Source: Tubulanus polymorphus
Lineage: Eukaryota; Animalia; Nemertea
Direction: 5' to 3'
NCBI RefSeq assembly: GCF_964204645.1
Contig: NC_134030.1
Span: 12,545,947 to 12,609,946 of the forward strand
Length of the DNA: 64,000 nt
In this document: piece after piece, positions 28,401-63,472 of the stretch
Layout of the letters: every line of letters begins with the position of its first letter
Numbering within the stretch: position 1 is the stretch's first letter
Made by a program: the position numbers and the translations under genes
The notes under the pieces: model-generated
What the model was told of the DNA's origin: nothing
The model's database searches: none
What the model saw: the letters and a program-made list of their open reading frames with translations, nothing else

Positions 28401-31400
28401 ACGGGAGAGTCACTCTTGATCTGAGTTATTAGAACTAGGGGTCCAGGGACACCATGCCCACTTGGGAAGTGGTTCCAAATGCTCAACAATCTAACAATTC
28501 AGGTATCAAAGGTATAAAACATCCCTTTTCAAAGAATACCCATCACAAACTGCAATGAGAAATGGCAAACTCAGAATTCGGGCCAAAATTGAAATTTTTG
28601 GACACTAAAAAAGGTCATAGGACGGCCATCTTGAGTCCGTATCCCAATTTTTGTTATGCTGATGGGCCCAGGGGGCATTCACATATATACGAAAGATCAA
28701 GGTAATTGATCGTAGCATCTTCAAAATTTCCCTCAAAAAGTTCAAAAATGTGTAAAAAGTGTTGATTTTGGCGAATAACAATGGCTGCCAGTCGGCCATC
28801 TTGATTCTGACAGCCAGTTTTTGGGCTGAAGATCTGTCTAGGGTAGATACATGTGTAACCCAAATATCAAGACATTACCTTGAAGCGTCTTCAAAACTTC
28901 CCAAAATAACTGATTTCCGTCTACGGACACACAACGGACGAAAAGTGAACGCAATAGCCCGCTGGGACTAAAGTCCCAAGTGGGCTAAAAATCATGTTCA
29001 TTTAGTTATAGAAATTCATTGTTTTTTTTGAGTTTCTGTAATAATATTTGTTCTGCCCTAATTTTTATTACTGTATAAACCAATGATATGCTTTGTAAAT
29101 ATGATGTAATAAAATAAATTTGAATTAAATTTGAACATGAGAATCAAGCATAACTTGTGTTTTTTCAACTTGTCTTACTTGTCTTTTGTTAACAGTTCCA
29201 GAGTTTCAATTACAATCAAATCCAAATTGGCTAAAAAGTACATAGGACTAAATGAAATGAACCGTTAGTTACTGCAAACCTATTCCAGTGTTATGTCGAT
29301 CGTGTTGAATCACTTTCCTTGAGTTAAAAGAATCAGATCTTCTATGGTACAACATCGGTCGAAGAGAGATATCTTGGTGTTGACGGTCCTTGACCATCTA
29401 ACTTCATGCGTTTGACATTGGAATCAGCATCATACCCATTTGAACTGCAAAATATTCATACAACATGAAAACCTATAGTACATGTATACAGTAATCAAAC
29501 TTTCACCGATGTTGGATATTTGAATGAACATTAGGTTTATTTCAGTATTCTATAGCAGGAAATAATAAGCCCAATCAATAGGCCCTATTCCCATTGGAAC
29601 AATTGTATAATGCGTACAGCTGTACCGTACACTTATCAGTCAAGAATGGAGAAATCGATATACCAAACCTACGAACAGCAAAATGTACAGGCCTACAATG
29701 ATTTCTGGTATACAAGCCTTGACCACATGAACGTTTTGGTTTGACTATTAATGTCAGCAGGTCAGAGAAAGCCTGGCCAAACTTAATCACATGGCTCAAA
29801 TCAATTAGTCTTTCTGCGTGTGAATATTTCACTGTATTGTTTTAAAAATAGGCCTATCGAGTGAATTAGTACATAGACTGAATTAGACTTTAGGCTAGTC
29901 CTGACCAAATCCTATCCATGTTATAATGGCACCAGTTAGGCCCTATAGTAACATCACTGGAGGGCCGACAAGAGGGAAAAAGTTGTGTTTGTAGTACATA
30001 GGCATGGTAGGCTTGTCGTACTCACGTAATACTTAAAACGCTGTTGTTACCTGTACGTGACTGTACGGTGATTTCTACAGGTTAGCCGTATGTGAGTACG
30101 TTAACGCTCAGACTTGCAATATTGGGATTCGAAACCAAACGAAAAAAAATCCAGTTGAAGTCCGGTGATTTACCCACTGTGCCACAGAACATAACTGCAG
30201 GGTGGATGAAATTTGATTTATAAATAGCCTAGCCTCACCTAACCCAAACTCTATTCTTTCACGCATGCGCGTTTCCAGATTATAGGCCTAGGAACTCACG
30301 TACGGCGTTTTTAGGGAACTCACGAACGGTTAACCTGTGGATATCACTGTACAGTCACGTACGGGTAACAACTTCGTATATACTTAAAATGGTATTGGCT
30401 ACTAGGAACTCACGTACGGCGTTAGTAGGGAACTCACGTACGGCGTTAGTAGGGAACTCACGTACGGTTAACCTGTGGGGAGATCACCGTACAGTCACGT
30501 ACGGGTAACAACTATGTACTTAAAATGCTATTGGGTACTATATAATAGGCCTATATATATAGACAAATAAATACCGGTAGGTAGGCTTTCTTGCTTAGCT
30601 TCCACACTTCACAACCGAACCAACCAGTATATTTATTCCCAGTACGCACCAACCGGCATAGGCCTAACACTGTTTGTCAACTGTGTGTACCGTAGTAGGC
30701 TATCGATAATCACCTGATACTTTTCTGTGGTTTGTTTTCTCTCTGAGTCGAACGTAATTCCTAATTCTAGTAGCCCTCCGCGACTCAACGACCTTGATTT
30801 AAACTTGATCAATTCAAAATATGTTTATTGACGCTTTTCGTTACATGAACTGATCAGCAATATACTTAAATGAAATAACCGGAATAACAAGAAATCCAAA
30901 ATATTAAAGAGGTAACAAACAAATTGCCGTAAACCTGTCAGACACGCGAACGCCGGACTCGTAAACTCTTGGACTCGGACCCGCTGAGCAATAAATTCAT
31001 AAAATTGACTTTGAAATTGATTGTGGAGAAGAGAGGGAATAATTCGATAGCTCTTCCTCGAAAAGAAGAGAGATATTTCTGAAAGAAAACACAACATGGC
31101 TACTAATTGAACGGAGCCAAATTTCCGATGTTTACGGCTCGACAGTGCCTTTATAACGTGGATTTATCAACATTCCCATGCAGTATCTGGAGATTGAAGT
31201 GAGCTGAAGGATATCATGCGGATTGTATCGGCGACAGCGGTAAGGTAAGGAAGCCTTTACACTTTTAACAAAAACTGTGTGGAAATGGGAAAAAAAAAAA
31301 AAAAAATATAGCTGCAAAGCAGCGATAACGGGTTTTCTGCACAGTCTTAGAATCCTGTTCAACGGTGGATTTCAACAAAGCATTTGATAAGGCTCAACAT

Positions 31401-34400
31401 CAGCCATTACTAAACAGGCTATAAGGAAACAGTATCAATGATAGGTCGCCCAAATGGCTCAGCAGTTATCTCTGAAAGGAAACTTGTAACCGAAATCAAC
31501 GGAACGCCTCATCTTGGAATAAGTCGGTCAAACTAGTGGAGTCACACAAGGTAGTATCCTAAGTTGTCTTCTGTTTAATGTCCTGACAAATGACATACAC
31601 AGTAATCCAACATATACCAGACCGAGTAAATTTCCAAATCGACCTTAACACGCTGTTCGACCAAAAAAATTAATGTTCCAAGAAAATCTTGTTCGAATAA
31701 AAATAATTCTGTTTGATCCAACAATACGCTTTTTGCTTGAACCAAAAATTTTCTTCATTCTGACAAAAAATGTGTTCGAATAAAAAGCTATGTTATTGTT
31801 GAAATGAAAAATTTTTAGTCCCAGCAAAAAAATTTGGTTGAGCGAAAACAATTTTTTCGGAACGAATGCTTGAATGAAAACAATTCTGTTCGATTGAACG
31901 AAATACTTAATACTTTCGGTTCGGAAAAAAAAACTTTTTTCAATATACTTGTTCGAACGAAAAACTTAATGTTCTGACAAGAAAATTCTGTTCAAATTAA
32001 AACGATTCTGTTCAATTGAACGATTGTTCGAACGAAAAACCTTTCGTTTGGACAAAAAAAAAGTTTGTTCAACTTTGTTCTAGCGATTTTTTCAAATTGG
32101 TTCAATCGTATAGAATATTATTGGTTCGAACGAAATAAATTTTGTTCCGACGAATTTTCAAGCGAAAGGTCTTTTGAACGAAAAAAAAAAGATATTTCTG
32201 GTGCTCCGCAGTAACTTAAAGCCGGACGGAGGTTGGTCTTGTGACACGATGCGATCCTCATGTGCATCGCAAGTTTCGGTGCAAGTCGGTTGCAATACGA
32301 TTGTGTACGACTAGTTTCTGCCAGTCGCAAGAGCGCGTCGGTTGGTTGTGACAGTCGTGTCGCGTCCCAGAAAGTAGAACACGTATGACTCCATGTGACT
32401 GGCGTTGCTGAAAGATGAGGACGCCAGTGATATGACGACTGTACGGAAGCGATACAGGGCCTCGAGTTGTCAGATTAATCAGATTAATCGACTTCAAAAT
32501 GGGCGAAAGCATAAGTCTTTATTACGTTATTAATTGGCCTAATTATTCAAAAGCTAATAAAGTGGGCGACAAAACCAAAATAATCAATTGTCGTGGGCGA
32601 TAATCCAAAATAATCAATTGTCGCTGGCGATAAAACCAAAATATTGAATTGTCGCGGTCGACAAAACCAAAAAAATCAATTGTCGCGGGTGATAAAACCA
32701 AAATTTTGAATTGTCGAGAGCGACAAAACCAAACTAATGAATTGTCGCGGGCGAAAAAACAAAAATAATGAATTGTGGCGGGCGATAAAACCAAAATAAT
32801 GAATTGCCGCTGCCGATAAAACCAAAATATTGAGTTGTCGCAGGCGATAAAACCAAAATATTGAATTGTCGCGTGGGACAAAACCAAAATATAGAATTGT
32901 CGCGAGCGACAAAACCAAAAAAATGAATTGTCGCGGGCGATAAAACCAAAATCTTGAATTGTCGCGGGCGACAAAACCAAAATATTGAATTGTCGCGAGC
33001 GACAAAACCAAAAAAATGAATTGTCGCGGGCGATAAAACCAAAATCTTGAATTGTCGCGGGCGACAAAACCAAAATATTGAATTGTCGCGGGCGACAAAA
33101 CCAAACTAATGAATTGTCGCGCGCGATAAAACCAAAATAATGAATTGTCGCGGGCGATAAAACCAAAATAATGAATTGTCGCTGGCGATAAAACCAAAAT
33201 ATTGAATTGTCGCGGGCGATAAAACCAAAATAATCAATTGTCGTGGGCGACAAAACCAAAAAAATGAATTGTCGCGGGCGATAAAACCAAAATCTTGAAT
33301 TGTCGCGGGCGACAAAACCAAAATATTGAATTGTCGCGGGCGACAAAACCAAACTAATGAATTGTCGCGGGCGATAAAACCAAAATAATGAATTGTCGCG
33401 GGCGATAAAACCAAAATAATCAATTGTCGCGGGCGACAAAACCAAAAAAATGAATTGTCGCGGGCGATAAAACCAAAATCTTGAATTGTCGCGGGCGACA
33501 AAACCAAAATCTTGAATTGTCGCGGGCGACAAAACCAAAATATTGAATTGTCGCGGGCGACAAAACCAAACTAATGAATTGTCGCGGGCGACAAAACCAA
33601 ACTAATGAATTGTCGCGGGCGACAAAACCAAACTAATGAATTGTCGCGGGCGATAAAACCAAAATAATGAATTGTCGCTGGTGATAAAACCAAAATATTG
33701 AATTGGCGCAGGCGATAAAACCGCGACAAAAAAAAAATTGTCGCAGGCGATAAAACCAAAATAATGAATTGTCGCGTGCAACAAAACCATAATAATGAAT
33801 TGTCGCGGGCGATAAAACCAAAATAATGAATTGTCGCGGGCGATAAAACCAAAATATTGAATTGTCCTGAGCGATTAAACCAAAATATTGATTTGTCGCG
33901 GGTGACAAAACCAAATTATTGAATTGTCGCGGGCGATAAAACCAAAATAATGAATTGTCAACCAAAATTATTGTTTTGTCGCGTTATTTTAGTTATGTCG
34001 TTTTGTCATAATGTCGCCCTCATTTGCATATACGTGTTTTTTTACACATGGCCCTTATCAGCCACCATACTAAAGCCTTAAGGTCGCGTAAAACTCGATA
34101 AACACTTCAAGGGACACAGCGAACGATCTCCTTTCCCCCACAGCGAACGCTTAACCTAGTAGAGGCTACTAGCCTATGTAGGCCTATGTATATGCGTAGG
34201 CCTAACATCCAGACAGATTGGTCTTAGGCCTATTGAATAACTACCCACCTAAATATCGTAAATTTTGTTTTGAAGTTCAATCCAATGAGTCCGTTAATAA
34301 ACGCAACAATTATACTGTGTCTGTTTGAGACAGTAAAGCTCAGTTCCAGTAGGCCTAAAGCCGCGTCAAACTCGATAAACACTTCAAGCGACACATCGAA

Positions 34401-37400
34401 CGATCCCCCTTCCCCCACAGCGAACGCTTACTCCGAATGTCAAGTGTGAGTCCAGCATACGGAAAGGATTGTGTTATATACTTGTATTTAGTAAATACCT
34501 TGTGCATTTGACAATGATCGGTATGTACTGTAGGAAATATAGAGTATTGATGGTATTGATATAGAGGTTGAAGCCCGCGGCCGAATAAAGTAATATATTC
34601 TTTTATTTTGATACCTCGTCGACATAACAGCTTTTCTCCGCTATATCTCTTCGGCGTGTTTCGTTTAGGCCTACGACTCCCCGGTACACTTATGATTTAT
34701 CTTAGTAAATACACGGTTAATTTGATAAAGAAAAATAGGTATTGCTAAACTAATTGCAAGACGCCAGCAGCCAAATCACTGGTAGTAATAAATTAATTTG
34801 TACTCGATTTGATTCCCATGATGAGGTGAAACTCGTAGCTGATCCCCGGAACGACGATGTAGTGACACACGTCGATTCGTCGATGTTTACGGCTCGACAG
34901 TGCTTTTAAAATCTAAAGTAGGTAATTTCCTGTATATCGGTAATACGATTTGATAAGGAAAATGGGCTATTGTTAAAATTAGTTTTTATAAACCGCGACA
35001 GAATGTGCAATCTTTGGGTAATAAATTTGTTAATTTATGCTTGAATTGATAATTGATGTGACAAGAAACGTGCGGTAGATTTCGGAAAGAGGACTTAGAA
35101 AAACATGTCGGCTCTTTGAATGGGGCTCAATTTTCGATGTTTACGGCCCGACAGTGCTTTTGTAACGATGATTCTTCAAAATACGCACGGGGTATTTGTA
35201 GATCGAAGTGAGCTGAATGATATCAGACGGATTGTATCGACAACAGCGTCAAGGTAACAAAGCTTTTGTTCTTTTAGTAAAAATAGTGTGGAAGAAAATA
35301 ATAATAATAATAATCACGCGGATATCAATAGGGTTTTCTGTGAAATAACAGAAAACCCTAATAATCACGCGAATTTCAATAGGGTTTTCTGTGAAGACAC
35401 AGAAAACCCTAATAATGATAAGAAACACGCGAATCTCAATAGGGTTTTCTGTGATGTAACAGAAAACCCTAATAATTTCATTTGTATAGTGCCCTTTCCG
35501 TTGTGTAAAAATTTTTAACGGCGCCATTGATAGCTAAACTTTATATGCAGCTTTGAACAGGATTTAGGTTTGCATCTGAATGACAGAACTGATGTCTCTG
35601 AAAGGAGTGATGGTGGTAGAGAATTCCAGAACATGGCATGAGCAACAACTTTGTAACTGATTGCAGTTACAAAATATGCATAAGTACCAATATGAATAGA
35701 TAAATTGTATAAGATTTAATATTTAACTCCACTCCAAGGCAAGAACAAAAGATTGGGTGATCCCATTGCTATGTGATATGTATCCCATGAGCGTGCTAAT
35801 GATAATCAAATATTAAGACTAGAATTCAAAAAGCTATAGACATTTTCCTCTGAAAGTCTTTTTCCATCTACGGATGAGGATCTGATATACTAAAGATCTC
35901 CTCCCAAAGAACACAAATGACAAATTTCAATAGAAAATAGCGACTTATGAGGTAGGAAGCTACAAGCCTCGAAATTCTGGCCAAAATAGATCTTTTGGGC
36001 ACAGAAGGTGACAGGATGGCTATCGGTGGCTGATTGACCTAATTTTACTTAAGATCATGGGCCCTTAAGGGATAAAGTACAGGGAAAATGTTTTTATCAA
36101 CTACACTCTTATATTGAAGCAACGTATGCTAGCAATATAAGATGGGTCACCTCTGGAGAGGGTGCGAAAAAGGTTATCATGTAGAAGTCCAGGGAGACAC
36201 CATGCCCACTTGGGAAGTGGTTTCAAATGCTCAACAATCTAACAATTTCAATATTCAACGCCCCCTGGTGGCCATATACAAAAACCAATGACCTTGAAAC
36301 TCACCACAATCATACAACACGTTAAGCTACAACTTTCTAATTCATTGCGGTAACAAAATATGCTTAGGTATCAATATAATGTGGAAAAACTTTTCCCACC
36401 TACGAATGAGTACTGATGACACCAAGATGGCCGCCAATTGCGTCATAATTGGCTGATCAAAAATACCTGTCCCAGGTATAAAACATCCCTTTCCAAAGAA
36501 TACCCATCAGCAATTGCAATGTGAAATGGCAAACCAGTAGGAAGCTACAGGACTCAGAATTCAGGCCAAAATTGACATTTTTGGGCACTTAAAAAGTCAT
36601 AGGACGGCCATCTTCAATCCGATCGACCCAATTTTGTTATGCTGATGGGCCCTGTATTCAAATATATACGAACCATCAAGGTAATTGATCAAAGCGTCTT
36701 CAAAATTTCCCTCAAAAAGTTCAAAAATGTGTAAAAAGTGCTGATTTTGGCGAACAACAATGGCTGCCAGTCGGCCATCTTGAATCTGAGAGGGCCTGTT
36801 TTTGGGCTGAAGATGTGTCTAGGGTAGATACATGTGTAACCCAAAAATCAAGACATTCCATTGAAGCGTCTTCAAAACTTCCCAAAATAACTGGCGGACG
36901 AACGTCTGGACGGACGAAAAGTGAACGCAATAGCCCGCTGGGGCTTAAGTACCAAGTGGGCTTAAAAGTCGTTTATCCTTACATAAATCCAGCCAGCTAA
37001 GCAATGGCTATGTACGAGAAATGTATTGAGGGAAATTTCCCCCACAGCGAACGCTTACTCCGAATGTCAAGTGTGAGTCCAGCATACGGAAAGGATTGTG
37101 TTATATACTTGTATTTAGTAAATACCTTGTGCATTTGACAATGATCGGTATGTACTGTAGGAAATATAGAGTATTGATGGTATTGATATAGAGGTTGAAG
37201 CCCGCGGCCGAATAAAGTAATATATTCTTTTATTTTGATACCTCGTCGACATAACAGCTTTTCTCCGCTATATCTCTTCGGCGTGTTTCGTTTAGGCCTA
37301 CGACTCCCCGGTACACTTATGATTTATCTTAGTAAATACACGGTTAATTTGATAAAGAAAAATAGGTATTGCTAAACTAATTGCAAGACGCCAGCAGCCA

Positions 37401-49400: not shown

Positions 49401-52400
49401 AAACAATGAGCACTAATCCGGTAATTTACTATCAGAAACAACAGATCCCAAATGGTGATTGTTGAGATATAATGATTTGACAATCTATAACCTACCAATT
49501 TTCATGATGGATTCCGATGCGATTGCCGATATCATCTCGCACGAAAAACAAGAACCAAATCTCCGTCGCTGCTACTCTTGGTTTCCGTCAGTGAGCACTC
49601 GCTTACCGCGGCGGATTCTCCGCGATCTTGGAGGGTGGAAGTCGAACCCCCCTAAATTATTTTAACGGATTTGCGCGAATTGGGAAGACCACAAAATTCG
49701 GCAACAAAATGGCGGATTCCCGCCATTTGGCGTGATATTCACATCCTTGTGAAAACGCTTTGATTCAAAGCGTCACCATTGCCCTTCAAAACTTCACAAA
49801 TGTGTAGAAAGTGCTGATTTTGGCAAACAACAATGGCTGTCAGTCAGCCATCTCGATTCTCAAAGGGCCAGTTTTCAGGGAGATGTGACTAGGGTACATG
49901 TATATAGGTACCAAAGATCAAGATAATCCATTGGAGCATCTTCAAAACTTTCCGAAACAACTGGATTCCGTCTACGGACAGACGAACAAAAATGAATGCA
50001 AATGGCCCCCCTGAGACGTATGTCTCATATGGGCTAAAAATGTATAAAAGTGCTATTTCAGCAAATATGAATAGCTGCCAGTCAGCCATCTTGAATCTGA
50101 TAGGGCCAGCTTTTTGGGCTGAAGATGTGTCTAAGGTAGATATACGTATTCAACTAGATTCAATATATGGACAAAAGAAAATTGAACGCAATAGCCCAAG
50201 TAGGCTACAAATAAAAGAAAAAGAATCTAAACTAAATTTCGAGTAAAAGAAATACCTCTGGACTGTATGTTAACCTCAATTTCATAGCAAATACAGCAGC
50301 GGATCCAGGGCCGGTGCACAGGGGGCACGTGCCCCCCCCTAAGTCCTCGCTAATTTCTTATGGTCTGACCTTTTAGTGAGAACGAAGACAAGCATGTGAA
50401 AAATCCCGCTGAAATTGCTTAAGCTTATGTCGTCATTTACAGTTACCAGCGCTTTTCTGCAGCAGTCCTACATGTTCATGTCGTTTCATTGGCCGGTGTT
50501 CATTGGGTTTAGTCGTTTTGAATTCTAACAATCCAAATTGCGAGTTAAATCGTACTCTGATCGTGCCCAGAACGTGTCTCTGCGCGTCCAATTTTTTAAA
50601 ATTTTCTGGGGGAGGACCCGCAGACCCCCCTATTTAGATTTGTGCACCCCCCTCCATGGAATCCTGGATCCTCCGCTGAAATACCAGGAATGAAACCAAC
50701 TACTATAACTGAACACTCCAACACATTTTTCATACCCATATGCATGCGTAAAGTATTCACTCATTCACCTGATGAAACTATTGGTACTATACACTAATAA
50801 CGAAAGCTTGTGCGTCAAATATACTAGTTAAACCTATAAAGTTTGACTTGTCTCCCTGTATTTATAAAGCATAAAGTCTTGAATGTTATCAATTCTGTGT
50901 AAAAGCAAACATGCTTACCTGAAATAGTGTAGGAACAATGGCGCGAAGGTCATCATAATATTTTGGCTGTTGATTGAAGATGTTTTCAATCATCTTAGAT
51001 AGGAGAGCTATATTGCCATTCTTGTACAATGCACATAAATCCATCAACTTGGGAATATCAAAGATGAAGTTTTCATATATAATTTCACCAAATACGGATG
51101 GCTTGATGTGACTTTCTATCGATTCTTTATGAGTAGCCATCCGTAAACAGACCATAAATATTCGTCGATGAATGTCTTGATGGCATTTCACTGCGGACAA
51201 AGGCAGACATGAGGCATAATTCTCATCATAGTACCTATTGGATATACAATAACCAGTATAAACCATCATAGCTTTTGTATCATCTTATTTTTGGTTATTC
51301 TGCAGTGGAACTAAGATTATAACATTATCCAACTTCTATTTTATATTTTGTATATAATTCATATCTGTTTGTTCGTTTTGCCTATTGTTGTTCAGATCTT
51401 GGTTTCCATAAGACTGACCCCATTCGATTGTTCATTCAACTTTACGATTGGATGGCTTTTTAAGTATTGTCTGCAACCTGTAAGTAGCCAGCAGGTCTTG
51501 AACACTCTTATGACTCTTGATAGTGAATAAAGCAGCATCACCCCTAGTCCCGCTGAAGTCACTTATACTATTGCATCTTGCAAGAAAGTATTTTGACCCC
51601 TAGTTGATTTACTGATGTTTTTTCAGTACAGAACATAGGATCCAGGATATGGGCTTTGTTACATATATGCATGGTAAAAAAATCCAGATCAACAATATGT
51701 ATGACTAGCCATTTAAAAACCATCAAAATTACCACCGACATATAGATTTTTAAGGCAAATAAATAGAAAATACAGATGCAATGCAGCCATAAAACATTTG
51801 CTATAGTTAAAGATACTAGTTGTAGTGTGCCACCTTATGGCCACCTTATTTCCAGCCTTGTGGTCGTAATCAAGTATACTATACTAATTCTGTAAATTAC
51901 CACATTCTACATTCATGGATGCATGCATGTATCAGATATAGTACACCTTTTCTACAATTCATAGAGGGGCCACTTACAAGTGTTTGACTGTATTAAGTTG
52001 AACTATAACTTACCTAGGAGCAGATTGTAAATATGATTCTATGCATTTGTGCAAAGTCTCATCAAATATCACTTGGCACCAAAATTGTTGATGAGGCATA
52101 CACAACAAACAGCGAAGATCTTCGTTAATAAAAGCCAATCGTTCTTTAAACTCTTCAACATGACCTTCATCTTCAAGGTTAGCTGGAGGTGGATGATACA
52201 CCACAAATTTCAAATCCGTCTTCCATCGTAGGTGCTGTAATGAAAAATAGACTGTTGCAGTGTGTGACAACATAAACTTGAGGGATCGTCAAGCCCACTT
52301 GCAAAAAGGAAAATCTGATAACATCAATATTCATCATCCTTTGGTGATAGTTCCCAGAAAACGATGGCCTTGAAAATCATTGCAAGAAGAGATTAATTGT

Positions 52401-54528
52401 TCTTTAAAAGGGGGTAAGCCTATTAATCAGAAAAGGAAATGTAAAATCCAAATGAAAGATTGGAACTTTTATGCAAATGCTTTTCATATCATTTCATCAT
52501 AAATTGTTTTCATTTCTTGCACTAACCGTACAGGCCTATTCATGGTATAAAAAGTCTCCAATACTTAACAACTAGTCATGTGAGCTCAACGGATCGGCTA
52601 GTCAAATTCCTTAAGGTAGGGACACATGAGGGTATTTTTTCACCCGATCGCGGCGAATCGCTCGTGTGGTGAATTCCACAGCGTAATCTATTTTCATCAA
52701 CCAATAGGATGCATTGTTGATATCATGTGATTTGTTAAATCTCTCCCGCTAAGTGCCAGACGCTGACCGAATTTCGGTTTGATCACGGCGTGTGCCCGCT
52801 CGTATCGGGTGTATATATTCGTCGGCGAATTAAATCGTCGCAATCGGGCGAAAAAATACGCTTATGGTCATCATTCTCAACCCCAAAAGAATAGAATTTC
52901 AAAACTCTATGAACCTATGTACCATTCATTCCTAATTTAAAATGCTTCCATCATCATAAGACATGCCATGAGCTACATTTTTGCAATTGGTTGAAAGTAC
53001 AAAATATGCCTGATAACCAGTACAATGTGAAAATACTAAGCTATTCTGCTATTCAACGCTCCCTGGGAACTATGTACATAAACTAATAACCTAGAAACTC
53101 AACACAATCATACAACATGTCATGAGCTACAGCTTAACAATTGATTGCGGTTACATAATATTCTATAGTACCAATCTAAATAGGCAAATTGTACATAACA
53201 CAATATTCAACTCCCCCTGGTGGTTGGAACAAATAACTGCTTAACCCCAATTCAAAGCGAGGGGATGAAAATCCTATGACAGTGATAGCATTTATCAAAT
53301 ATCAAGACTATTTAAGTTCAAACCTGTCAATATTTTTCTCCAAAAGCCATTTCTACCTACAAATAAGGACTGATGACACTAAGATGGCTGTCGATTGTGT
53401 CAGGCTTGATTGATCATAAGATCTGTCTGATATGTTTAAGATCCCTCCCTAAAGAATACCTATCACAAATTTCAATGAAAAATGGCATACCTCTATCTTT
53501 TCCCTTGGTCTTATTGATTTGAAAACGGAATAGAATTGAATTGGATTTTCTGAAATTTGTGAAAAAGCTATTTTTCCCGGACTTTGCATAATTGTCAATG
53601 ATATTTTCCATAGGCTAGAGCAAACAAAAATATTCCTCCCAAAAACCAAATCAACTAAAAATTTCACAGAAATCGATCTTGAAATACAAATTTCAATCTT
53701 AAAATAAAACCTGGAAGTAAAACGGTAGACGATACCGTGGGTTCATGTGAACACTTGCTGCTAAGCCAATCATAGAGGAGTCTTTGTTTTGATTGGCTTT
53801 TTAAAACAGATATCTTTGCGTTCAGATTTTCGCAAAAAAGCTCCAGATTTTTAACAAGGCCTTTTTTCAAAATTCAGCTCCATAGGATTTGGAGAATGGA
53901 TAATGCTTAAATGGATGATTTGTATGAATATATGCTCAGTTGTACAGTCAAAGAGCCTTCGCTCTGGAAACCATGTCATTAAAATTTGTCATTAATTCGT
54001 CATTCCATGTCATTAATGAACCAATATCAAGACAATCCATTGAAGTGTCTTCAAAACTTCCCAAAAATACCTGATTCCATCTATGGACGAAAGAAAAGTG
54101 AACACTCTAGTCTGCTGTGACTTAAGTCCCAAGAGGGCTAAAAAACGCTGGTTTATCTAGGCTGCACAGTTTCACTGGTCGTATTTAGACCAAATTGAGG
54201 TATGTGTTCTAAAGTTTAAGAGAAATATGAAAAGTTGCACCATCTTCCCTCCATCGTAATATGCGGCTCAGATGCAGTATCGATATAGATGAACTGTCAT
54301 CACGTTCAATTACGATTCGCATGTGAAACTATCCTGTGCCACCCTACTTACGTATTTTTCGGCAGGTCTCTAGGCTGTACAATAGCTATTATTGATAAGC
54401 AGAATGCTGTCTGCTTTGATAAAAGGCCTACCTACTAAGCCACTTACGATAGCGGGGAATTTTTGTTCCTTTCCATTTAGTACAATCGTCACTCGTTTTT
54501 CATCTAATGTTTGGTTGGTTAGATCCAT
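13225..54528 (-). CDS. ASCC2: Activating signal cointegrator 1 complex subunit 2 (CUE-domain protein), spliced CDS span, 14 coding exons, 746 aa
   Basis: Joined exons give 2241 nt in one frame with GT-AG boundaries. Peptides match ASCC2 hallmarks recalled from the human protein: FWCQVIFDETL, LRMATHKES, FDIPKLMDLC, VKDLLPNLGNGFIE (CUE), DEFDIF, YEDEYDDTYD, NHNRRAMADRKRMKGMIP. Confidence 0.96.
13616..14181. mobile_element. piggyBac-like MITE (TTAA TSD)
   Basis: TTAA|CACGTTCACTGCC...GGCAGCGAACGTG|TTAA. Confidence 0.8.
16218..16323 (-). CDS. ASCC2: ASCC2 coding exon 13 (PFVIPRALRESEESEEEEE...IQQE)
   Basis: ttaaag|G acceptor, GAG|GTGGGT donor, 106 nt; RPFxIP motif then acidic tract. Confidence 0.92.
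16337..17781 (-). mobile_element. Family-A HINE-like element with ~140-bp internal tandem repeats (second head at 16580)
   Basis: CTAGGGGTCCAGGGACACC stem-loop plus subTIR GCCCACTTGGGA at one end, GTCCCAAGTGGGC hairpin at the other. Confidence 0.85.
18242..18436 (-). CDS. ASCC2: ASCC2 coding exon 12 (DKVDMSLLDEK...YEDEYDDTYDDNVGAEDADSADELTSR)
   Basis: ttcag|A acceptor, AG|GTAAAA donor, 195 nt. Confidence 0.94.
18520..18648 (-). CDS. ASCC2: ASCC2 coding exon 11 (NQPTQ...RHNIYDNDEFDIFNKDSVDLSRIHRGK)
   Basis: tttcag|G acceptor, AA|GTAAGG donor, 129 nt. Confidence 0.94.
19266..19369 (-). CDS. ASCC2: ASCC2 coding exon 10 (ICLEEYQYDVERVINGILEERLPPSLQEIDRQLER; CUE C-half)
   Basis: ttacag|ATT acceptor, AG|GTGAAA donor, 104 nt. 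Confidence 0.94.
19595..19672 (-). mobile_element. tRNA-derived SINE-like fragment (second copy at ~11387-11440)
   Basis: B box GGTTCGAATCCC on the minus strand; shared AACCTGATGGCATCG...CCCTGCCACACTA. Confidence 0.5.
20163..20279 (-). CDS. ASCC2: ASCC2 coding exon 9 (VELSEG...ELESLVSAVKDLLPNLGNGFIE; CUE domain N-half)
   Basis: ttttag|GTT acceptor, GAG|GTGCAT donor, 117 nt, phase 0 matches exon 8. Confidence 0.93.
20598..20870 (-). mobile_element. Diverged family-A fragment; apparent continuation at ~35625-36080 beyond the family-B nest
   Basis: Family-A head and internal repeat units. Confidence 0.55.
21262..23980. repeat. 31-bp satellite AAAACCAAAATAATGAATTGTCGCGGGCGAY (split by a family-A insertion at 21571-22953)
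   Basis: Direct tandem units; 31-aa periodicity in the ORF track. Confidence 0.95.
21571..22953 (-). mobile_element. Full-length family-A HINE-like element inserted into the 31-bp satellite
   Basis: Both termini present; five ~140-bp internal units; satellite resumes on both sides. Confidence 0.88.
24150..24745 (-). mobile_element. Family-A fragment
   Basis: Homology to the family-A body; followed by an L2-like LINE tail fragment (24745-24840). Confidence 0.75.
24915..26135. repeat. Dispersed repeat family C (further copies at ~45115-45545 and ~53510-53985)
   Basis: Shared blocks such as AGAAATCGATCTTGAAATACAA and AAAATAAAACCYRGAAGTAAAA. Confidence 0.7.
26168..26980. repeat. 31-bp satellite array
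   Basis: Same unit as above. Confidence 0.95.
28435..28990 (-). mobile_element. Family-A element, internally deleted
   Basis: Both termini present, no internal repeat array. Confidence 0.85.
30039..30516 (-). mobile_element. MITE with 9-bp TSD, internal tRNA-like A/B boxes and telomere-like motif; right end duplicated
   Basis: TSD TACTTAAAA (30030-30038, 30517-30525); long TIR GTTGTTACCYGTACGTGACTGTACGGTGAT. Confidence 0.8.
32560..33965. repeat. 31-bp satellite array (about 45 units), inside an IR-bounded element ~32440-34070
   Basis: Same unit; ends GTACGGAAGCGATACAGGGCC / GGCCCTTATCAGCCACCATAC are imperfect inverted repeats. Confidence 0.93.
34410..42292. repeat. Tandem triplication of a 2627-bp unit
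   Basis: Identical ORFs recur at +2627 and +5254; junctions share a TT microhomology. Confidence 0.97.
36181..36966 (-). mobile_element. Family-A element (identical copies at 38808-39593 and 41435-42220 via the triplication)
   Basis: Both termini, one internal unit. Confidence 0.85.
42302..42449 (-). CDS. ASCC2: ASCC2 coding exon 8 (DETRIEFIMEAI...TEPNQ)
   Basis: aag|T acceptor with U12-like branch site, CAG|GTTAGT donor, 148 nt; DETR motif. Confidence 0.88.
42450..43405 (-). other. U12-type (minor spliceosome) GT-AG intron of ASCC2, 956 bp
   Basis: 5' site GTATCCTTTAC; branch-like CCTTTGAC with its A at 42462, 12 nt from the 3' end; no polypyrimidine tract. Confidence 0.85.
43406..43480 (-). 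CDS. ASCC2: ASCC2 coding exon 7 (FIVDFETKFPIEDDFVVLTQSSYF)
   Basis: tttcag|G acceptor, AT|GTATCCTTT U12-type donor, 75 nt; aligns to FLRDYDALFPVAEDISLLQQ. Confidence 0.9.
44299..44472. mobile_element. Tc1/mariner/pogo-type MITE (TA TSD); related fragment at ~14220-14308
   Basis: TA|CAGTGCAACCTC...AAGGTTCCACTG|TA. Confidence 0.75.
44996..45070 (-). CDS. ASCC2: ASCC2 coding exon 6 (GTDQIIEECVEGFLHFWNATLGEKR)
   Basis: ttttttag|T acceptor, AG|GTAAAA donor, 75 nt; aligns to the IEEFLQIFSSLLQEKR region. Confidence 0.9.
45579..45761 (-). CDS. ASCC2: ASCC2 coding exon 5 (LSKFYATMVPALKS...IQEIIKN)
   Basis: Follows a 79-bp intron; tatag|G acceptor, AG|GTAACT donor, 183 nt. Confidence 0.92.
45841..46067 (-). 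CDS. ASCC2: ASCC2 coding exon 4 (VFASVIEQCG...DILSYLQDTSETLLAFF...HEFHI)
   Basis: ttacag|GTT acceptor, AT|GTAAGT donor, 227 nt; not in the ORF track, translated by hand. Confidence 0.93.
48224..49749 (-). mobile_element. Non-autonomous hAT-like element interrupting a family-A repeat
   Basis: TIR CAGGGATGTGAA/TTCACATCCTTG; basic, transposase-C-terminus-like remnant at ~48600-48790. Confidence 0.5.
50294..50678. mobile_element. MITE with CAGC..GGATCCAGG TIR
   Basis: Imperfect TIR; AAATA duplicated on both sides. Confidence 0.7.
50766..50812 (+). ncRNA. Minimal type I hammerhead ribozyme motif (antisense within an ASCC2 intron)
   Basis: CAC-CTGATGA-..TATTGGT/ACTAATA..-GAAA-GC-TT^-GTG; palindromic AAGCTT stem III. 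Confidence 0.6.
50919..51234 (-). CDS. ASCC2: ASCC2 coding exon 3 (YYDENY...LRMATHKES...FDIPKLMDLC...PTLFQ)
   Basis: aatag|G acceptor, CAG|GTAAGC donor, 316 nt. Confidence 0.95.
52014..52234 (-). CDS. ASCC2: ASCC2 coding exon 2 (HLRWKTD...FWCQVIFDETLHKCIESYLQSAPR)
   Basis: ttacag|CAC acceptor, AG|GTAAGT donor, 221 nt. Confidence 0.95.
54448..54528 (-). CDS. ASCC2: ASCC2 coding exon 1 (MDLTNQTLDEKRV...KFPAI); exon itself starts at acceptor 54631
   Basis: ATG at 54528, in-frame stop upstream, donor GTAAGT at 54447, phase 0; resembles the ASCC2 N-terminus (PLD...PAL|H). Confidence 0.85.
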
Positions 54529-54899
54529 CCCTTCTTCAATTGTTATGGCAATGGTGGTACCTAGCTGTATCACGCACGGGCCTTCCTTGCTCTGACGTTG
54601 ACTACGGTCAGTCTAATTGATGCACCGGTACCTATAAATACAGGAAACGTTTGGTTAGAATTTCAAAATGGTGTTCTCATTTCAACACGAGAAAATGATG
54701 ACTATTTGGCAATCCCTCAATACAGTGTAAAATGGATATAAAAATGCTGTTTTATTGAGACTAGTCAGTAACCTTTCCTTTCTGTGCTCTAGTTTCACGA
54801 TCGGATATTTTTGCTGGTAAGCCCATCTTCCGATTAAGCTTACCACCAACGATCAGGTAACTAACTATAGAGACTGCACAGTTTCACTGGTCCTATTAA

Positions 54900-55289
54900 C
54901 ATGTTTGCTGCCACCTAGGAGATAAGTTCCAGTCACCATTGTCGATGCTATTAATTTTTGATATCATGCAATTCATATGCCGCCAGCACTATTTGTACAT
55001 TGATAAATCAATACACCAATCATGCTGGTCTGTTTTAGTATAAAAACCAATGACGAGATACCAGTAACTCGTCACTGGCAATCAAATAGAAATCTAAAAG
55101 AATAAAAGTTTCATTGTAAAATGATGATTTTAATCATTATATTCTCTCTTTTGCACCCCCCGTAAATAGGCCTAGTATCTTAACCTCTCCATGAAATGAC
55201 ATTGAATCGATGAAGATATAACTCACAACGGCAAACTGCGGTAGGCCCACCATGACAATTTATCTCATCAACAGTAGCGAACAAACGTG
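54900..55289. mobile_element. piggyBac-like MITE, deleted relative of 13616-14181
   Basis: TTAA flanks and collinear internal homology. Confidence 0.75.
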
Positions 55290-55421
55290 TTAAAACCAAA
55301 TTAAGCAAGCTAACGGGACATGACATGAAAAGTTCTTGACCCCAATAGAAGCCTAGGTAGGCCTACTAATCAGAATTATTGGAATGAAAAGACTAGTCTA
55401 GACTAGAGGATACTGGGGTAA

Positions 55422-57784
55422 CTAGGGGTCCAGGGACACCATGCCCACTTGGAAGTGGTTTCAAATGCTCAACAATCTAACAATTTCAATATTCAACGCC
55501 CCCATCCAATGACGTTGAAACTCACCGCAATTGTAGAACATGTCAGCAGCTACGATTTTGAAATTGATTGTGGTAACAAAATATGCCAAGTTACCACTAT
55601 AGGCCTAAAATGTAAAATACTAAGTTATTCTACTTTGGGTTCTGGGTATCATTTCCAGGGGCTCAGCTCACAGAGCCACTCAGCGCGTCCCCAGGTGGCA
55701 GATAGGGGGAGCCTCATTTGTGGGGCCTGTCAGGTCATAATACGGAAAGCCGACAGCGGACCATAGTCAGCCGAGCTGATGGCGCTCGCAAAAACCGCAC
55801 CTAGGAGACGGAAAAGTGATTCAAACACCTGGTCTGGTTAGTGACCATAAGCCCTGCAAGGCAACTTACCCGGGCAGGAAGGGCTCCCAGCCTCGGGTGA
55901 TGGCAGCCTTCCTAGGTGACGCAAAACACTGATTTAAAACCTGGGCAGGAAGGGCCCGCAGCCTTGGACGATGGCAGCCCTCCTTAGTGAAGGACATCAC
56001 TAATTCCAAAACCAGGATAGATCAAGTTTTCTAGCCCTACAAGGCAAATGATCTGCATCTGCCCCAGTCTCCGCCTTGTGGTCCCAGCGGCACTAGACAG
56101 AACATGACTGCTGCAGACGAGAGATCGATCGATGGTCACACCCTGAACGCAGTAGAGAAATTCTGCTACTTGGGCAGCATTATGAGCCATGACCCAAGCC
56201 TTGATGCAGAAATTACCCTACGCATTGCCAAAGCCATAACCGCATTCGGCAGACTAAATAAGAGGCTCTGGAACAATCATGGCATCAGACTGCCCAGCAA
56301 GATCCAAGTCTTCCAAGCGACAGTATTCTCATCTCTGTTACATGGATGCGAGACCTGGGCAATCTACAAGCGGCATATACACCAGCTTGACAGTTTTCAT
56401 ATGCGCTGTCTAAGACGCATCTGTGGAATATAATGGCAGAACTATGTACCGAACGCAACTGTGCTTGAGAGGTGTTGCTGTACTGGTGTGGAGGCATATA
56501 TCATGAAAGCTCAACTCCGCTGGTGCGGTCACCTTGAACGGATGGATGATAGCAGGATACCCAAGGCCCTACTATACAGCCAGCTGCGTGATGGCCGCTG
56601 TAATATTGGCCGTCCACACCTCCGCGTCAAGGACTCACTCAAGCTTCAACTGAAAGCCAGCGGCATTGACACCGAGACATGGGGACGTTCTGCCCAGAAC
56701 AGATTGCTCTGGCGCGCACCCACTGTCGTAATGCTGTTGCATCCTGGTGACCATATTCAAAACCTAATAACCTTTTACCTCACCACAATCATAGAATAGG
56801 CCTATGACATGAACTACAACTTTGCAATCGATCATGGTAACAAAATATGCCTAGGTACCAATATAATGAGGAAATACTAGGTTATTCTACTATTCAACGC
56901 CCCTGGTGACCATATAGAATAACTAATTTCCTTAAAACTCACCAGTCATGGACGATGTCATGAGCTAAAACTTTGCAATTGATTGTGGTAACAAAATAAG
57001 TATTGGTTAAAATATAATATTGAAATACTAAGATATTGTATTATTCAACGTCCCCTGGTGGCCATATACAAAAACCAATGAACTTGAAACTCACCACAAT
57101 CATAGAACACGCTATACGCTACAACTTCCTAATTCATTGTCGTGACAAAATATGCTTAGGTATCAATATAATGTGGAAAAACTTTTTCCCACCTACGAAT
57201 GAGTAGGCCTACTGATGACACCAAGATGGCCGCCAATTGCGTCATAATTGGCTGATCAAAAATACCTGTCTCAGGTATAAAACATCCTTTTCCAAAAAAT
57301 ACACATCAGCAATTGCAATGAGAAATGATGGCAAACCAGTAGGAAGCTACAGGACTCGGAATTTGGGCCAAAATTTTTTGGCACTTGAAAGGTCCTAGGA
57401 CGACCATCTTGAGTCCGATCGACCCAATTTTTGTTATGCCGATGGGCCCTGGGGGGTTCAAATATATACGAAAGATCAAGGTAGGCCTAATTGATCAAGA
57501 CGTCTTCAAAATTTCCCTCAAAAAGTTCAAAAACGTGTAAAAAGTGCTGATTTTGGCAAACAACAATGGCTGCCAGTCGGCCATCTTGATTCTGCCAGGG
57601 CCAGTTTTTGGGCTGAAGATGTGTCTAGGGTAGATACATGTATAGGCCTAAACCAAATATCAAGACATTACCTTGAAGCGTCTTCAAAACTTCCCAAAAT
57701 AACTGGATTCCGTCTACGGACGGACAACGGACGAAAAGTGAACGCAATAGCCCGCTGGGACTAAAGTCCCAAGTGGGCTAAAAA
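55422..57784 (-). mobile_element. Family-A element carrying an RTE LINE insertion and five TAGGCCTA micro-insertions
   Basis: Both termini present; interrupted at ~55636-56742. Confidence 0.85.
55636..56742 (+). mobile_element. Internally deleted RTE-clade LINE (structured 5' UTR joined to RT C-terminal region)
   Basis: VEKFCYLGS...EITLRIAKA...LLHGCETW...FHMRCLRRI and LRWCGHLERM...RIPKALLY in one frame with a stop at 56431; triplicated RTE-like 5'-UTR motif (CTAGGAGACGGAAAA..GATTCAAAC). Confidence 0.88.
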
Positions 57785-58320
57785 GGCTATTCGCATTATA
57801 GATGACGCTAAATTTAACTCCCATACCTCGAGTATCTTTATGAAATATGAGATACTTAAACTTGACGACATAATCAAACTCGAAATCACAAAATTTGGAT
57901 ATAATTTCACGAAGAACGTTCTGCCGACACCTGTAATGAAACTATACAGGAAAAACTCTATTCACCATAATTACCAAACCAGAAATCGAAATCTCCCTGG
58001 GACCGAACCACATAGGCTACTAGTTTGATATCATAAATCATTTCTAACTGAAGTACCAGCTCCCTGGCGTTGTAGGTACTTCACAAATCCTTAGAAATTC
58101 CACTACTTTTGAGAAGACCACCCTGACAACATATCAATATCAATCAGCCAAATTAATAATACTTAGTGATATCCATTATTCATTTATAAATATAACTTAT
58201 GTTAATATTATTACCATTATTATTGTTATCATTATTATTAGGCCCTATCACTATTATTATTATCATTACTGTTATTACTAATTGAATATTATTATTATCA
58301 TTGTTATAGTTATCATTTAT
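57783..58320 (+). mobile_element. 3' fragment of a CR1/L2-group LINE with (ATT)n tail
   Basis: KAIRII...NSHTSSIF...ILKLDDIIKLE...HNYQTRN, a typical post-RT C-terminus. Confidence 0.7.
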
Positions 58321-58506
58321 TTCCTGTTTCTATTGCACCCTTCTTGCACGCTTTGCACTCGGGTTCAGCGCCTTGCAATTGCTTTTGAGTACAGCCCCAA
58401 AGACTTGCGCTGGATCCCTCATTTAACATCTCTAGTTATTCCGCATTGTTAAAATAACCTTATATCGAAATGTAGTTTAATGAAAATAAAATTGTTATTA
58501 TTTATA

Positions 58507-58960
58507 GCAATGAAAAATGGCAAACCATTATGAAGTTACAGGACTCAGAATTTCAGCCAAAATTGACATTTTTGGGGAGAAAAAAGGTCACAGGACGGCC
58601 ATCTTGAGTCTGATCGACCCAATTTTTCTCATGCTGATGGACCCTTGGGGGATACAAATATATCTGAAAGATCAAGGTAATTGATAGGCCTAAAAGCGTC
58701 TTCGAAATTTCCCTCGAAAATTCAAAAATGTGTAAAAAGTGTTGAATTTGGCGAACAACAATGGCTGCCAGTCGGCCATCTTGAATCTGAGAGGGCCAGT
58801 TTCTGGGCGATACATGTACAAAACAAATATCAAGACATTACCTTGGAGCGTCTTCAGAACTTCCCAAAATAACTGGATTCCATCTAATGATGAACGGACG
58901 GACGACGGGCGAAAAGTGAACGCAATAGTCCGCTGGGACTTAAGTCCCAAGTGGGAAAAA
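58507..58960 (-). mobile_element. Family-A fragment (hairpin end)
   Basis: Homology to other copies; more diverged relatives at 46284-46420, 47790-48220, 49770-50200, 52960-53480, 54020-54145. Confidence 0.8.
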
Positions 58961-59048
58961 AACTTTTTATGTCAGCTGCTGACACTTTCACCAAGAACCT
59001 TAGTGTCTGATGTACCACACAGGGTACACTAATGTCTATTTCAACCTG

Positions 59049-59515
59049 ACTTGAGAGCATTCCGGGTGGCCTAGCTCGCTAATTTTTGGTAGTACATACC
59101 TGATAAAGGTCTTAATAGGACCAGAAAGGACAGGCAGTCGACCTAAATCATCATTTTTTAATCCATTTGAAACTGTGTTGAAGGATAGGTATCCAAAAAG
59201 TCTTCACTGAAAGGGGTTAAATGAAGAGAAGTGACTCCATGATTTGAAAGTTTAACAATATGTTTCCACGCCTACGTATCAAATTTCGGTTGGTAGGCAT
59301 GGAGACATATTGTTAAACTTTCAAATCATGGAGTCTCTTTTCTCTCTGGAACCCCTCTCAATGCATATTTTTTGGATATCCTTCAATACAGTTTCAAATG
59401 GATTAAAAAATGATGATTTAGGTCGACTGCCAATGCATTCTGGTCCTAATAAGACTATTATCAGGTATGTACTACCAAAACTGACTGAGCTAGGCCACCC
59501 TTTATGCTCTCAAGT
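59049..59515. mobile_element. Foldback (almost fully palindromic) MITE, ~225-bp arms
   Basis: Arms are reverse complements around a ~17-bp spacer at ~59276-59292. Confidence 0.85.
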
Positions 59516-61175: not shown

Positions 61176-63440
61176 CAGTGCTTCATCTAGGCAAAAATAG
61201 AAGGGCGGGCCGCCCCGCCCCGAAAATAGCCGCCCTTGTGCCCTGCAGATGTGTCCCAGGCTCGCCCTTGTGCCCTCATCACTTGCCGTAGGTCTGCCCG
61301 CCTGCCCTCGTCAGTCACCGTTTCGTCAACAATACGATCCGCTTTTTAGTAGATTCCAACTTTTAGACGCTACCGCTGGCGCATGTGTAGCGCATTACTC
61401 GATGTGCGAGTAGCAGACGTCTCGATTAATGGTTTTTTCCGTAGAAAGCCTATTAGAATGCCGAATGAGAAGCGTAGGCTGGCAGAAAAGGAAAAGATTT
61501 TTAACTCTGAATCCAAGAAGCATAAAACGATTACTAGTTGGTTCAGCACAACGTGAGTAGGCCTATTAATTGTTATGTTGATGATTTCACGACGACGTAC
61601 CAACCATGCGATGATTCACCCGGTGGTTTAACAGGCGTATTTTCATACGGCCGTGGCTTATTGTGTACAATGACGTGTTACAATCGCTCTATTTGAATCT
61701 AGTACGGTCTTGAATACAATTCTGAGCGGTGGTAAAATGATTGACGTATTTTGTTAGGAGGATTGCACGTGGAGGATTGTTTTGTATAAGTGGGACTGGA
61801 GAGCGCGCAATGTTGCTAAAAATAGTGTACACACGGAGGCCACACGCCATGACTACAGCAGGCAATCCCTGCTGTATACTACAGAATAATATATACAACT
61901 AGTATTACATGCGTGCTTACACTATTGACAGCAGAGATGCGCGCGCTGTACGCGTATTTGATATAGCCTATTAATTCAAGGATAATAAATATTTTAAATT
62001 TCGAGTATAATAATAACATTTATGAATCATTAATTTGAATGAGGGGGCTATGAATTATTAAGGTGACTGATTAGAATAAAAAATCGCTATTTATTGAATA
62101 GTTTGTTTTGCATTGTCAGTTGTTAGTTATTATTCAGTTAGTGAATTATTTATTTTCTTCTCTCAGTCAAAAAAATCCAAATGACCCTCCCCCGGTCGGT
62201 GATGAAAGTCAACCTGGTTCTTCAGCATACGAACTCGACGATGTCGAATCACATTTTAGCGATGACGATGTCAGCGATGAAAATAACAATTTGATCAGTG
62301 ATAATGGTGTCGAAATTATCACAACACAGGAGAATCAAGAAAAGTCTAATGCTAAAGGTAGGCCTATCCATTAGAATTAATTTCGGTTATTTTCAATATG
62401 GCAGGTAGGTCCATGGTTTGACTGACACTGGAAAGTAAACTAAAAATATAGCTTGTCGTAGCCTATGGATGCCGTTTTACTATATCTTCTTTTACAGCTT
62501 ATGAAGGGCACCAGTGTGGGCCTTTTTAAAATTTTTGATATTTCTATAAGTCTGTTATCTTGTCAAAAATCTGCATGAGACTATTTATTAAATTTTTCAG
62601 GTCATGGTAAGCGTGCTGTAGGCTACAATGAATCATTGAAGAAGGAGAATCCTTGGGTGCGTGCTCATGTGTATACTGATCTAACCGAAGGAAAAACATA
62701 CACTGGGTTGATATGTGATATCTGTAAAAGAACCAACACGAAAGCGATGAATGGTAGCGACGTATGGTGTAACACCCCCTTTCGATGCCTTCGACTGGAT
62801 AAGGTTGTCCAACATTCTCGAAGTGAACAGCATAAACAAGCAATAGAGACAGATAAACAACGAGCGAACAATATGGACAAAATAGCGTCGGAAATGAATG
62901 AAGGAGAGGTGAAGGCCGTAGCTGATGCCATGCGCATCCTCCATTTTTGTGTTGTGAATCATATTGCATATACAACAAATCTCAAACCATTAGTGGACCT
63001 GTGTGTTGAACTCGGTGCTGATAATCTTCCAACTCTTAATAAAGCCAAGAACTGCCAGTATACAAGCCATACAATTATCCAGGAGATGCTAGATACAATA
63101 TCAGAGATTATCCAACACGATGTTCTAGATGAAGTCCGGCAATCCCCAGCTTTTGGTCTGATGTTAGACGAGTTGACAGATAGTAGCATCAAAAAACATC
63201 TTGCGTTAGCTGCTAAACATATGAATAAAAATGGTCAACCAACAATGTCATTCTTAGCAGATGAGGAACTTGTTGATGCCTTGGCAGACAGCCTGTTAAA
63301 GAAAGTTACTGGTTGTTTAAACAAATTAGATCTAGACATAACCAAAATGCACAGCATTGCCACTGATGGACCAAATGTGATGATGGGAGTTAGTAATGGC
63401 CTCCATAGAAAGCTCAGAGATATTCAACCCACTCTTCTCA
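61176..63440 (+). mobile_element. hAT DNA transposon, left end plus transposase; right end lost
   Basis: CAGTGCTT terminus followed by GC-rich subterminal repeats (GCCCTTGTGCCC x2), then the transposase. Confidence 0.6.
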
Positions 63441-63472
63441 CCCTCTCGACACTAACCCTATCGAAACCCTAA
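61458..63472 (+). pseudogene. Spliced hAT-type transposase (ZNF862/C17orf113-like), 3 exons 61458-61552, 62167-62357, 62601-63472; 385 aa, C-terminally truncated
   Basis: GT-AG joins keep frame. Zn-finger-like CDIC...HSRSEQH, FGLMLDELTD, IATDGPNVMMG motifs. ORF runs into (TAACCC)-like sequence where the HCxxH motif is expected. Confidence 0.8.

Follow-up and report, generated by a model that had tools for sequence, protein, structure and literature searches.

In a 64,000-nucleotide stretch of the genome of the nemertean Tubulanus polymorphus (C6:12,545,947-12,609,946; the assembly comprises 77 contigs and 268 Mb; hereafter the window), exons of the gene ASCC2 lie on the reverse strand, and upstream of them stand two copies of a dispersed repeat, family A, that carry the palindromic 8-mer TAGGCCTA at several positions. 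The present analysis concerns these 8-mers, which at their clearest sites are 6-bp insertions at TA dinucleotides (we call them scars), and the process that may have written them. An original prediction, made from the sequence alone, had put the 8-mer at more than 20 occurrences in the window against fewer than one expected by chance. Counting bears this out, with 25 occurrences compared to 0.46 expected from shuffles (100 shuffles, maximum 3), and all eight coordinates that had been named for TAGGCCTA are exact. Because 25 of the 33 AGGCCT hexamers in the window are flanked by T and A, the unit is the full 8-mer. Five of the 25 (75, 27202, 34666, 37293, 39920) share a flank belonging to a second repeat family, B, and are, judging by that flank, inherited copies of one ancestral site, while the flanks of the remaining 20 are unrelated and unique.

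Across the 268-Mb genome TAGGCCTA occurs 21,141 times, against ~3,400 for each of the same-composition motifs that served as controls (TAGGGGTA, 3,393; ATCCGGAT, 3,384; TACCCCTA, 3,218), and the AT-flanked form ATGGCCAT is likewise at control level (3,529). The excess of ~18,000 sites corresponds to ~0.09% of all TA dinucleotides in the genome. The phenomenon is real, genome-wide and mutational, and our literature search found no publication tying the TAGGCCTA motif to footprints or describing scars on a genome scale.

Both the flanks and the core are tightly constrained. In a 264-kb genome sample (the window plus 200 kb of further sequence), TA flanks alone were enriched among XY-GGCC-XY forms with the 16 possible dinucleotides, and among ten cores made only of G and C the enrichment was limited to the palindromes GGCC (47x) and CCGG (6x), with the mixed-core comparison GGGG/CCCC at background level. 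Outside the TA pair there is a weak purine-TA...TA-pyrimidine preference. The 8-mer outnumbers its 7-mer relatives by ~5:1 in the sample, and the 5-bp variant, of TAGGCTA type, also arises by insertion at a family-A TA. Variants of TAGGCCTA with one mismatch suggest ~4% decay, compared to ~10% divergence of the host repeats, so that many scars would be younger than the repeats that carry them. The CCGG counterpart, TACCGGTA, is a second over-represented TA-flanked palindrome, with 12,039 copies genome-wide (controls of equal composition, ~3,400-3,500), mostly in unique contexts, and two in the window (863-870, 30572-30579); a second element, with CC...GG ends, probably left it behind.

Insertions at TA sites of dispersed repeats

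The insertions can be read directly where a repeat copy with the 8-mer is aligned to paralogues that have a plain TA. The sites and repeats concerned are as follows; the 8-mers themselves have no assigned strand.

55167..55174, no strand: TAGGCCTA in a repeat resembling a miniature inverted-repeat transposable element (MITE); the paralogue at ~14.0k has TA
55358..55365, no strand: TAGGCCTA in unique sequence to the left of the family-A copy, without a paralogue for the ancestral state
55420..57784, + strand: family-A repeat copy with five scars (self-BLAST)
55600..55607, no strand: TAGGCCTA, insertion with neighbouring changes (alignment A2)
56797..56804, no strand: 6-bp insertion scar (alignment A3)
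57204..57211, no strand: clean TA to TAGGCCTA (alignment A1)
57482..57489, no strand: clean TA to TAGGCCTA (alignment A1 and paralogue-indel scan)
57643..57650, no strand: clean TA to TAGGCCTA (alignment A1)
58504..58964, + strand: second, partial family-A copy (self-BLAST)
58685..58692, no strand: TA to TAGGCCTA in the second family-A copy (alignment A1, copy 58504-58880)

In alignment A1 (MAFFT, eight family-A copies), the copy at 57150-57700 is longer by 6 bases at each of 57204, 57482 and 57643, where five to seven other window copies have a plain TA, and the insertion at 58685 is equally clean, as had been proposed for all four. The three remaining sites of the same proposal are more heterogeneous. 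At 56797, six paralogues lack the 6 bases and the net change is a clean +6, provided that a flanking C-to-T change is admitted to restore the ancestral TA; 55600 is messier (net +7); and 55167 differs from the repeat at 13.7-14.2k by TA to TAGGCCTA plus one substitution, in an alignment with many gaps. All three fit the proposal less cleanly than the four sites above. The family-A copies at 12k, 16-17k, 21-22k, 28k and 36k contain no TAGGCCTA, again as predicted, and the empty TA of the paralogues places the insertions after the insertion of the repeats themselves. When the 264-kb sample was compared to itself, those 6-bp insertions specific to one copy of a dispersed repeat that had the strongest support were all of the TAGGCC type.

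The main family-A copy has its boundaries marked by loose read ends, which number thousands at 55420 and 57784, and is interrupted at ~55640-56740 by foreign DNA containing two open reading frames (56104-56799) that look by eye like a reverse-transcriptase fragment and have no Pfam match. Contigs from three public sequencing runs (X1-X3), which may derive from the assembly's own sample, are identical to the reference across 55167, 55358, 55600, 56797 and 58685; among them are an X1 contig at 55092-55441 that spans 55167 and 55358, an X3 contig at 56541-56833 over 56797 and an X2 contig at 58631-58753 over 58685. At 57204-57643 the reads are swamped by paralogous family-A copies.

The insertions did not reach the window copy by descent. 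Genome-wide, the closest relatives of the piece at 57034-57790 are 88-91% identical at most, and no family-A subfamily with this set of insertions was found. The 57204 insertion with its flanks is present in three copies (on C6, C3 and C1, that on C6 being the window copy), and the 57643 insertion likewise in three (C6, C4 and C7), against 1,842 copies in which the 57643 site is empty; the TA adjacent to that site is scarred in one copy, on C1. The scarred copies for the two sites are different ones, on different chromosomes, without co-occurrence of other insertions. The same sites also reveal what tends to be inserted. Counting any TA-NNNN-TA at the 57643 site, four of six carry GGCC (one of these at the adjacent TA), and the only 5-bp insertion of the form TA-NNN-TA found there is GGC, while the 57204 site has received GGCC three times and CCGG once. 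Overall, family A is scarred at ~1.6e-3 per TA, near the genome mean. By these comparisons, TAGGCCTA has been inserted repeatedly and independently at homologous TA sites, irrespective of subfamily.

Three further copies bear on the same kind of event. The CCGG case at the 57204 site is TACCGGTA in the family-A copy at G000:C64:14578, a 6-bp insertion at the TA that matches the window position. A single family-A copy with diverged flanks (G000:C1:5894131) has TA-CCAG-TA at a site that carries GGCC elsewhere, which may be what a mariner-like element with CCAG ends left on excision. At 9391-9745 of locus L027, immediately to the left of the window, a ~350-bp palindrome with perfect arms derives from a family-B edge, and one of its arms has an extra TAGGCCTA, another dated insertion event.

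Regional clustering and the ASCC2 neighbourhood

The scars are unevenly distributed along the window, and the clusters and the ASCC2 exons are placed as follows.

29849..30666, no strand: hot cluster, TAGGCCTA at 29849, 30283, 30546 and 30659
29891, 30225, 30696: 7-mers in the 29849..30666 cluster
30572: TACCGGTA in the 29849..30666 cluster
34170..34357, no strand: hot cluster, TAGCCTA at 34170 and TAGGCCTA at 34179, 34197, 34225 and 34350
34666..34673, + strand: TAGGCCTA internal to family B, inherited, with identical flanks and family-B homology on both sides
50892..51269, - strand: ASCC2 exon, approximately human residues 104-208 (PDB 6yxq_B, E = 3.3e-32)
52013..52240, - strand: presumed upstream ASCC2 coding exon (N-terminal region), an open frame and the most 5' piece located
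61558..62366, no strand: right edge of the 55-62k hot zone, TAGGCCTA at 61558 and 62359
61964, 62459, 62619: TAGCCTA/TAGGCTA near the right edge of the hot zone

The clusters that had been seen by eye in the window are real. Over 104 contiguous kb, 19 of 25 non-inherited TAGGCCTA sites have a neighbour within 500 bp, compared to a mean of 5.3 for randomly chosen TA sites (p <= 5e-5). The position dependence that had been suggested is equally evident within the family-A copy, where a piece of 757 bp (57034-57790) holds 3 scars in 44 TA sites, with P = 5.5e-5 at the family-wide rate. The zone at 55.1-62.4k contains 10 scars per 544 TA sites, ~20x the genome mean, and the zone at 29.8-30.7k contains 4 per 96; in such hot zones 2-7% of TA sites are scarred vs 0.09% genome-wide, and certain regions are favoured 20-50 times over the genome mean. 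The 5-bp variants TAGGCTA and TAGCCTA co-cluster with the 8-mer, as had been noticed, with 24 of 57 located in the 17% of sequence that lies within 400 bp of an 8-mer (2.5-fold, p = 6e-6). Hot and cold 1-kb windows showed no difference in GC or CpG content. The cluster at 34170-34357 and its inverted paralogue in L027 are one extra scar apart.

The claim that the insertions mark the 5' region of ASCC2 stands only loosely. A cluster does lie upstream of the gene, but the nearest scar is ~2.9 kb upstream of the exon at 52013-52240 and there is no TAGGCCTA from 46641 to 55167. That exon presumably belongs to ASCC2, by its resemblance to the N-terminal sequence of the human protein. The scars upstream sit in decayed repeats and run to 62.4k, and a cluster 446 kb from the window has 18 sites in ~5.5 kb of mostly unique DNA. 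The survey shows that the ASCC2 locus is not special and is one of many hot zones.

Two other features fall within or beside the 55-62k zone. A hairpin-like repeat at 59049-59515 has arms of 139 nt, 89% complementary to each other, and a further pair of arms inside them; related copies lie in loci L012 and L009/L010, and its read depth of several hundred fold indicates a high-copy family. At the right edge of the zone, a 297-codon open frame (62579-63469, + strand) matches DUF4371 (E = 4e-7) and weakly a C17orf113-type zinc finger, by which it would be a hAT-transposase-like gene or a relic of one.

Transposon excision as a candidate origin

We favour, at a probability of roughly 0.65, the reading that TAGGCCTA sites are footprints left on excision, and repaired by end joining, of a transposon that targets TA and has inverted GG(CC) ends, with Tc1/mariner/pogo as the most likely source superfamily. 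What has been observed is the insertion at TA, the independence of the events, their position dependence, the exclusively palindromic core and the minor product; the transposon, its ends, the stagger of its cuts and the reason for the hot zones are what we infer from them. On insertion the transposon would duplicate its TA target, and on excision the transposase would cut the non-transferred strand within either inverted end, a few bases from its tip. Each flank would then retain an identical 3' overhang made of the outermost bases of the transposon, and the break would be sealed by end joining. Ends that start with GG, GGC or GGCC would all yield TA-GGCC-TA. A 3-base overhang GGC would pair via GC, and a 4-base overhang GGCC would be fully self-complementary, much like a sticky end, so that pairing of either kind would give one dominant product, TAGGCCTA; the 5-bp scars TAGGCTA/TAGCCTA would be minor repair products. 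The restriction of the enrichment to palindromic cores fits two identical inverted ends rather than random tailing by a polymerase. Scars of this kind would be nearly neutral, and would therefore drift to fixation and build up in the zones that received the element most frequently. Genes and regulatory regions are favoured by some Tc1/mariner and pogo elements (PMC9976928), hence hot zones would not be foreign to the superfamily.

The closest known counterparts are the footprints of Tc1/mariner elements, which cut the non-transferred strand within the element; once the 3' overhangs have been joined, 2-4 terminal bases from the inverted ends remain between TA repeats (PMC6943129). As here, these footprints (TACAGTA/TACTGTA for Sleeping Beauty) have a flanking TA duplication and come with minor products that are one base different (PMC6943129). 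Unlike them, the core in the present case is a perfect palindrome, GGCC, and one product dominates; ~18,000 excess copies are fixed in a germline genome, in hot zones; and an element with matching ends was not seen in the sequence covered. GG ends are unusual for the superfamily. The Tc1-like element Minos reportedly leaves a 6-bp footprint made of four terminal bases plus TA, with 4-base 3' overhangs that are said to pair with mismatches and to give two alternative scars. The net gain of 6 bp at TA is the same here, the difference being that a GGCC overhang would pair perfectly. P-element-type footprints are likewise excision scars retained in the genome, but consist of 15-17 bases per end with a 7-8-bp duplication, as opposed to 2-4 bases plus TA.

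The source was sought by inverted-repeat searches over the 264 kb (with TAGG/CCTA and TAGGC/GCCTA anchors, and with general TA-flanked repeats) and at eight transposase loci. The searches returned only internal family-B hairpins, the large L027 palindrome and unrelated MITEs. The L027 palindrome was rejected as an element, its arms extending beyond the TA. The family-B hairpins (TAGGGTTTTCTGTG...), considered as mini-elements with GGG ends, are 51-60-bp tandem subrepeats and not the source. Longer scars of the form TAGGCT...AGCCTA, taken as possible clues to the ends, occurred 704 times against 515 for the control and were dominated by one repeat-family motif, and the TAGGCT[G/C]AGCCTA series proved to be such a motif. 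Beside a transposase at locus L007 of the PHIS superfamily (PIF/Harbinger, ISL2EU, Spy, Pangu, Nuwa), one TAGGCCTA was considered as an element end; its outer flank is conserved in four of four copies, which makes it internal, and it resembles the family-B site no more than chance allows. An inverted repeat at L001, a Tc1-like locus that stops short of the element ends, was tried as a CC-ended terminus and had six of seven copies in one orientation.

Three transposase families are candidate sources: a pogo family, a spliced Tc1-like family and a PHIS family with 400-aa products. A Pfam search for mariner gave no match anywhere, control genomes included, and is hence uninformative, and DDE_3 (Tc1-like) had 8 matches in the genome. 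The pogo candidate comprises eight copies with identical Pfam score and open frames of 588-775 aa. The spliced Tc1-like family, with at least one intron, is 97-99% identical over >3.1 kb among three loci, which stop short of the element ends:

L002, G000:C8:3.92 Mb: spliced Tc1-like copy
L003, C39: spliced Tc1-like copy
L004, C12:10.34 Mb: spliced Tc1-like copy

This family looks like a young, large Tc1-type element; searched against proteins, the open frame of L002 gave only relatives of 48% identity or less. PIF/Harbinger-type transposases (DDE_Tnp_4) gave at least 150 matches from 371 candidates on many contigs, including twelve that share one score and have an intact frame of 400 codons, a hint that this family was active very recently.

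Several results weigh against excision by such an element. In the window, the 200 kb of further sample and the eight transposase loci, no element of the form TA|GG...CC|TA was present, and no longer remnants retaining more of an element end were seen. The Tc1-like elements with readable ends start with CAGGG (TA|CAGGGTG in a maT-like family), while GG ends are typical of PIF/Harbinger-type elements and not of Tc1/mariner (PMC4482050). Among the reads listed at the locus, where repeat reads dominate, no occupied or polymorphic allele was seen, and our literature searches turned up no precedent for ~18,000 fixed scars from an element without visible copies. The original prediction had read the insertions as TA duplications around a GGCC or GGC core, that is, as excision footprints or the scars of abortive cutting; the insertion, the palindromic core and the 5-bp product agree with excision, and the matching element that it called for was not found in the 264 kb or at the eight loci.

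A more far-reaching version of the excision reading, which we offer tentatively, is that a TA-targeting transposon, active recently or even now, lands overwhelmingly in particular chromatin domains and nearly always leaves again, its self-complementary GGCC overhangs keeping the repair uniform. Its scars would then form a fossil map, at base resolution, of germline landing sites and hence of accessibility, in a genome with almost no resident copies. Another element, with CCGG ends, may be producing a similar map alongside. Excision footprints are usually seen singly in experiments, and here one scar has seemingly accumulated ~18,000 times, such that one genome could reveal the landing history of an element, its regional bias and the germline repair of cohesive overhangs. 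As every event lengthens the sequence by 6 bp and creates another TA, the process contributes measurably to the small insertions of the species. Should promoters or open chromatin of the germline prove to underlie the hot zones, scars would offer a free marker of such regions in an animal without functional genomics.

Alternative origins

The same mechanism could have a different source, namely a hitherto undescribed PHIS group that duplicates TA, and we consider this unlikely, though it is the most serious of the alternatives. Inverted repeats of PHIS elements mostly start with GG, with which the core of the scar is compatible, their short targets are AT-rich, and the groups differ widely in target duplication (PMC4482050); in this genome they are also abundant and apparently young, with transposases far commoner than those of Tc1 type (at least 150 matches vs 8 for DDE_3). 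However, the described duplications are TWA, AT, ANT, CWG, TNA or none, and never TA, with ISL2EU duplicating AT (PMC4482050), and the corresponding scar forms are not enriched here: the AT form ATGGCCAT is about as frequent as the controls (3,529 in the genome, 1 in the sample), and TWA-GGCC-TWA forms are rare or absent in the sample (TAAGGCCTAA, 0; TTAGGCCTTA, 2). Terminal element bases held between the target repeats are, moreover, a hallmark of Tc1/mariner (PMC6943129), and the sole PHIS-linked TAGGCCTA examined, that at L007, is internal to its repeat and not an end.

Alternatively, no mobile element would be involved, and a host or domesticated nuclease would make staggered breaks at TA in particular regions, with repair adding GGCC. 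That no source element was found in the sample or the eight loci, and that the scars are extremely uniform and regionally concentrated, would suit this proposal. We hold it to be improbable, as the flanks contain no template for GGCC, random G/C tailing would also yield GGGG/CCCC, which is at background, and CCGG at the same TA is more simply accounted for by a second element family. No repair process known to us inserts one constant tetranucleotide.

Still less probable is a roughly even, genome-wide mutation whose products cluster because selection keeps TAGGCCTA in regulatory DNA, as a palindrome to which a protein binds. An 8-bp palindrome is plausible for a dimeric binding protein, yet the scars lie in decayed repeats, with a retroelement nested among them, at 3-6 kb upstream of ASCC2, the 5-bp variants that break the palindrome cluster together with it, and composition is the same in hot and cold windows. 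Finally, inheritance within a family-A subfamily, or artefacts of assembly or polishing, might be entertained for the five insertions in view of the thousands of family-A copies and the many reads at 57204 and 57643 without the 6-bp gap, but is scarcely credible given relatives that are no closer than 88-91%, the recurrence of the 57204 and 57643 insertions in two other copies each, and different ones, the exact reproduction of five sites in independent contigs and a TA-site logic that holds at ~21,000 places.

Family B, whose hairpins were set aside above, has a structure of its own. Each of its 51-60-bp subrepeats contains a 32-bp hairpin bounded by TA (TAGGGTTTTCTGTG...), with ~980 sites genome-wide, those listed on contig 1 occurring from 11.3 Mb onward only. 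The tandem subrepeats recur in the window:

35329-35471: family-B tandem subrepeats
712-794, 37956-38098 and 40583-40725: further family-B tandem subrepeats

From 34410 to 42292, three head-to-tail copies of a 2,627-bp unit, each containing a family-B part and a family-A fragment, are 100% identical to one another, through either tandem duplication in the very recent past or an effect of the assembly.

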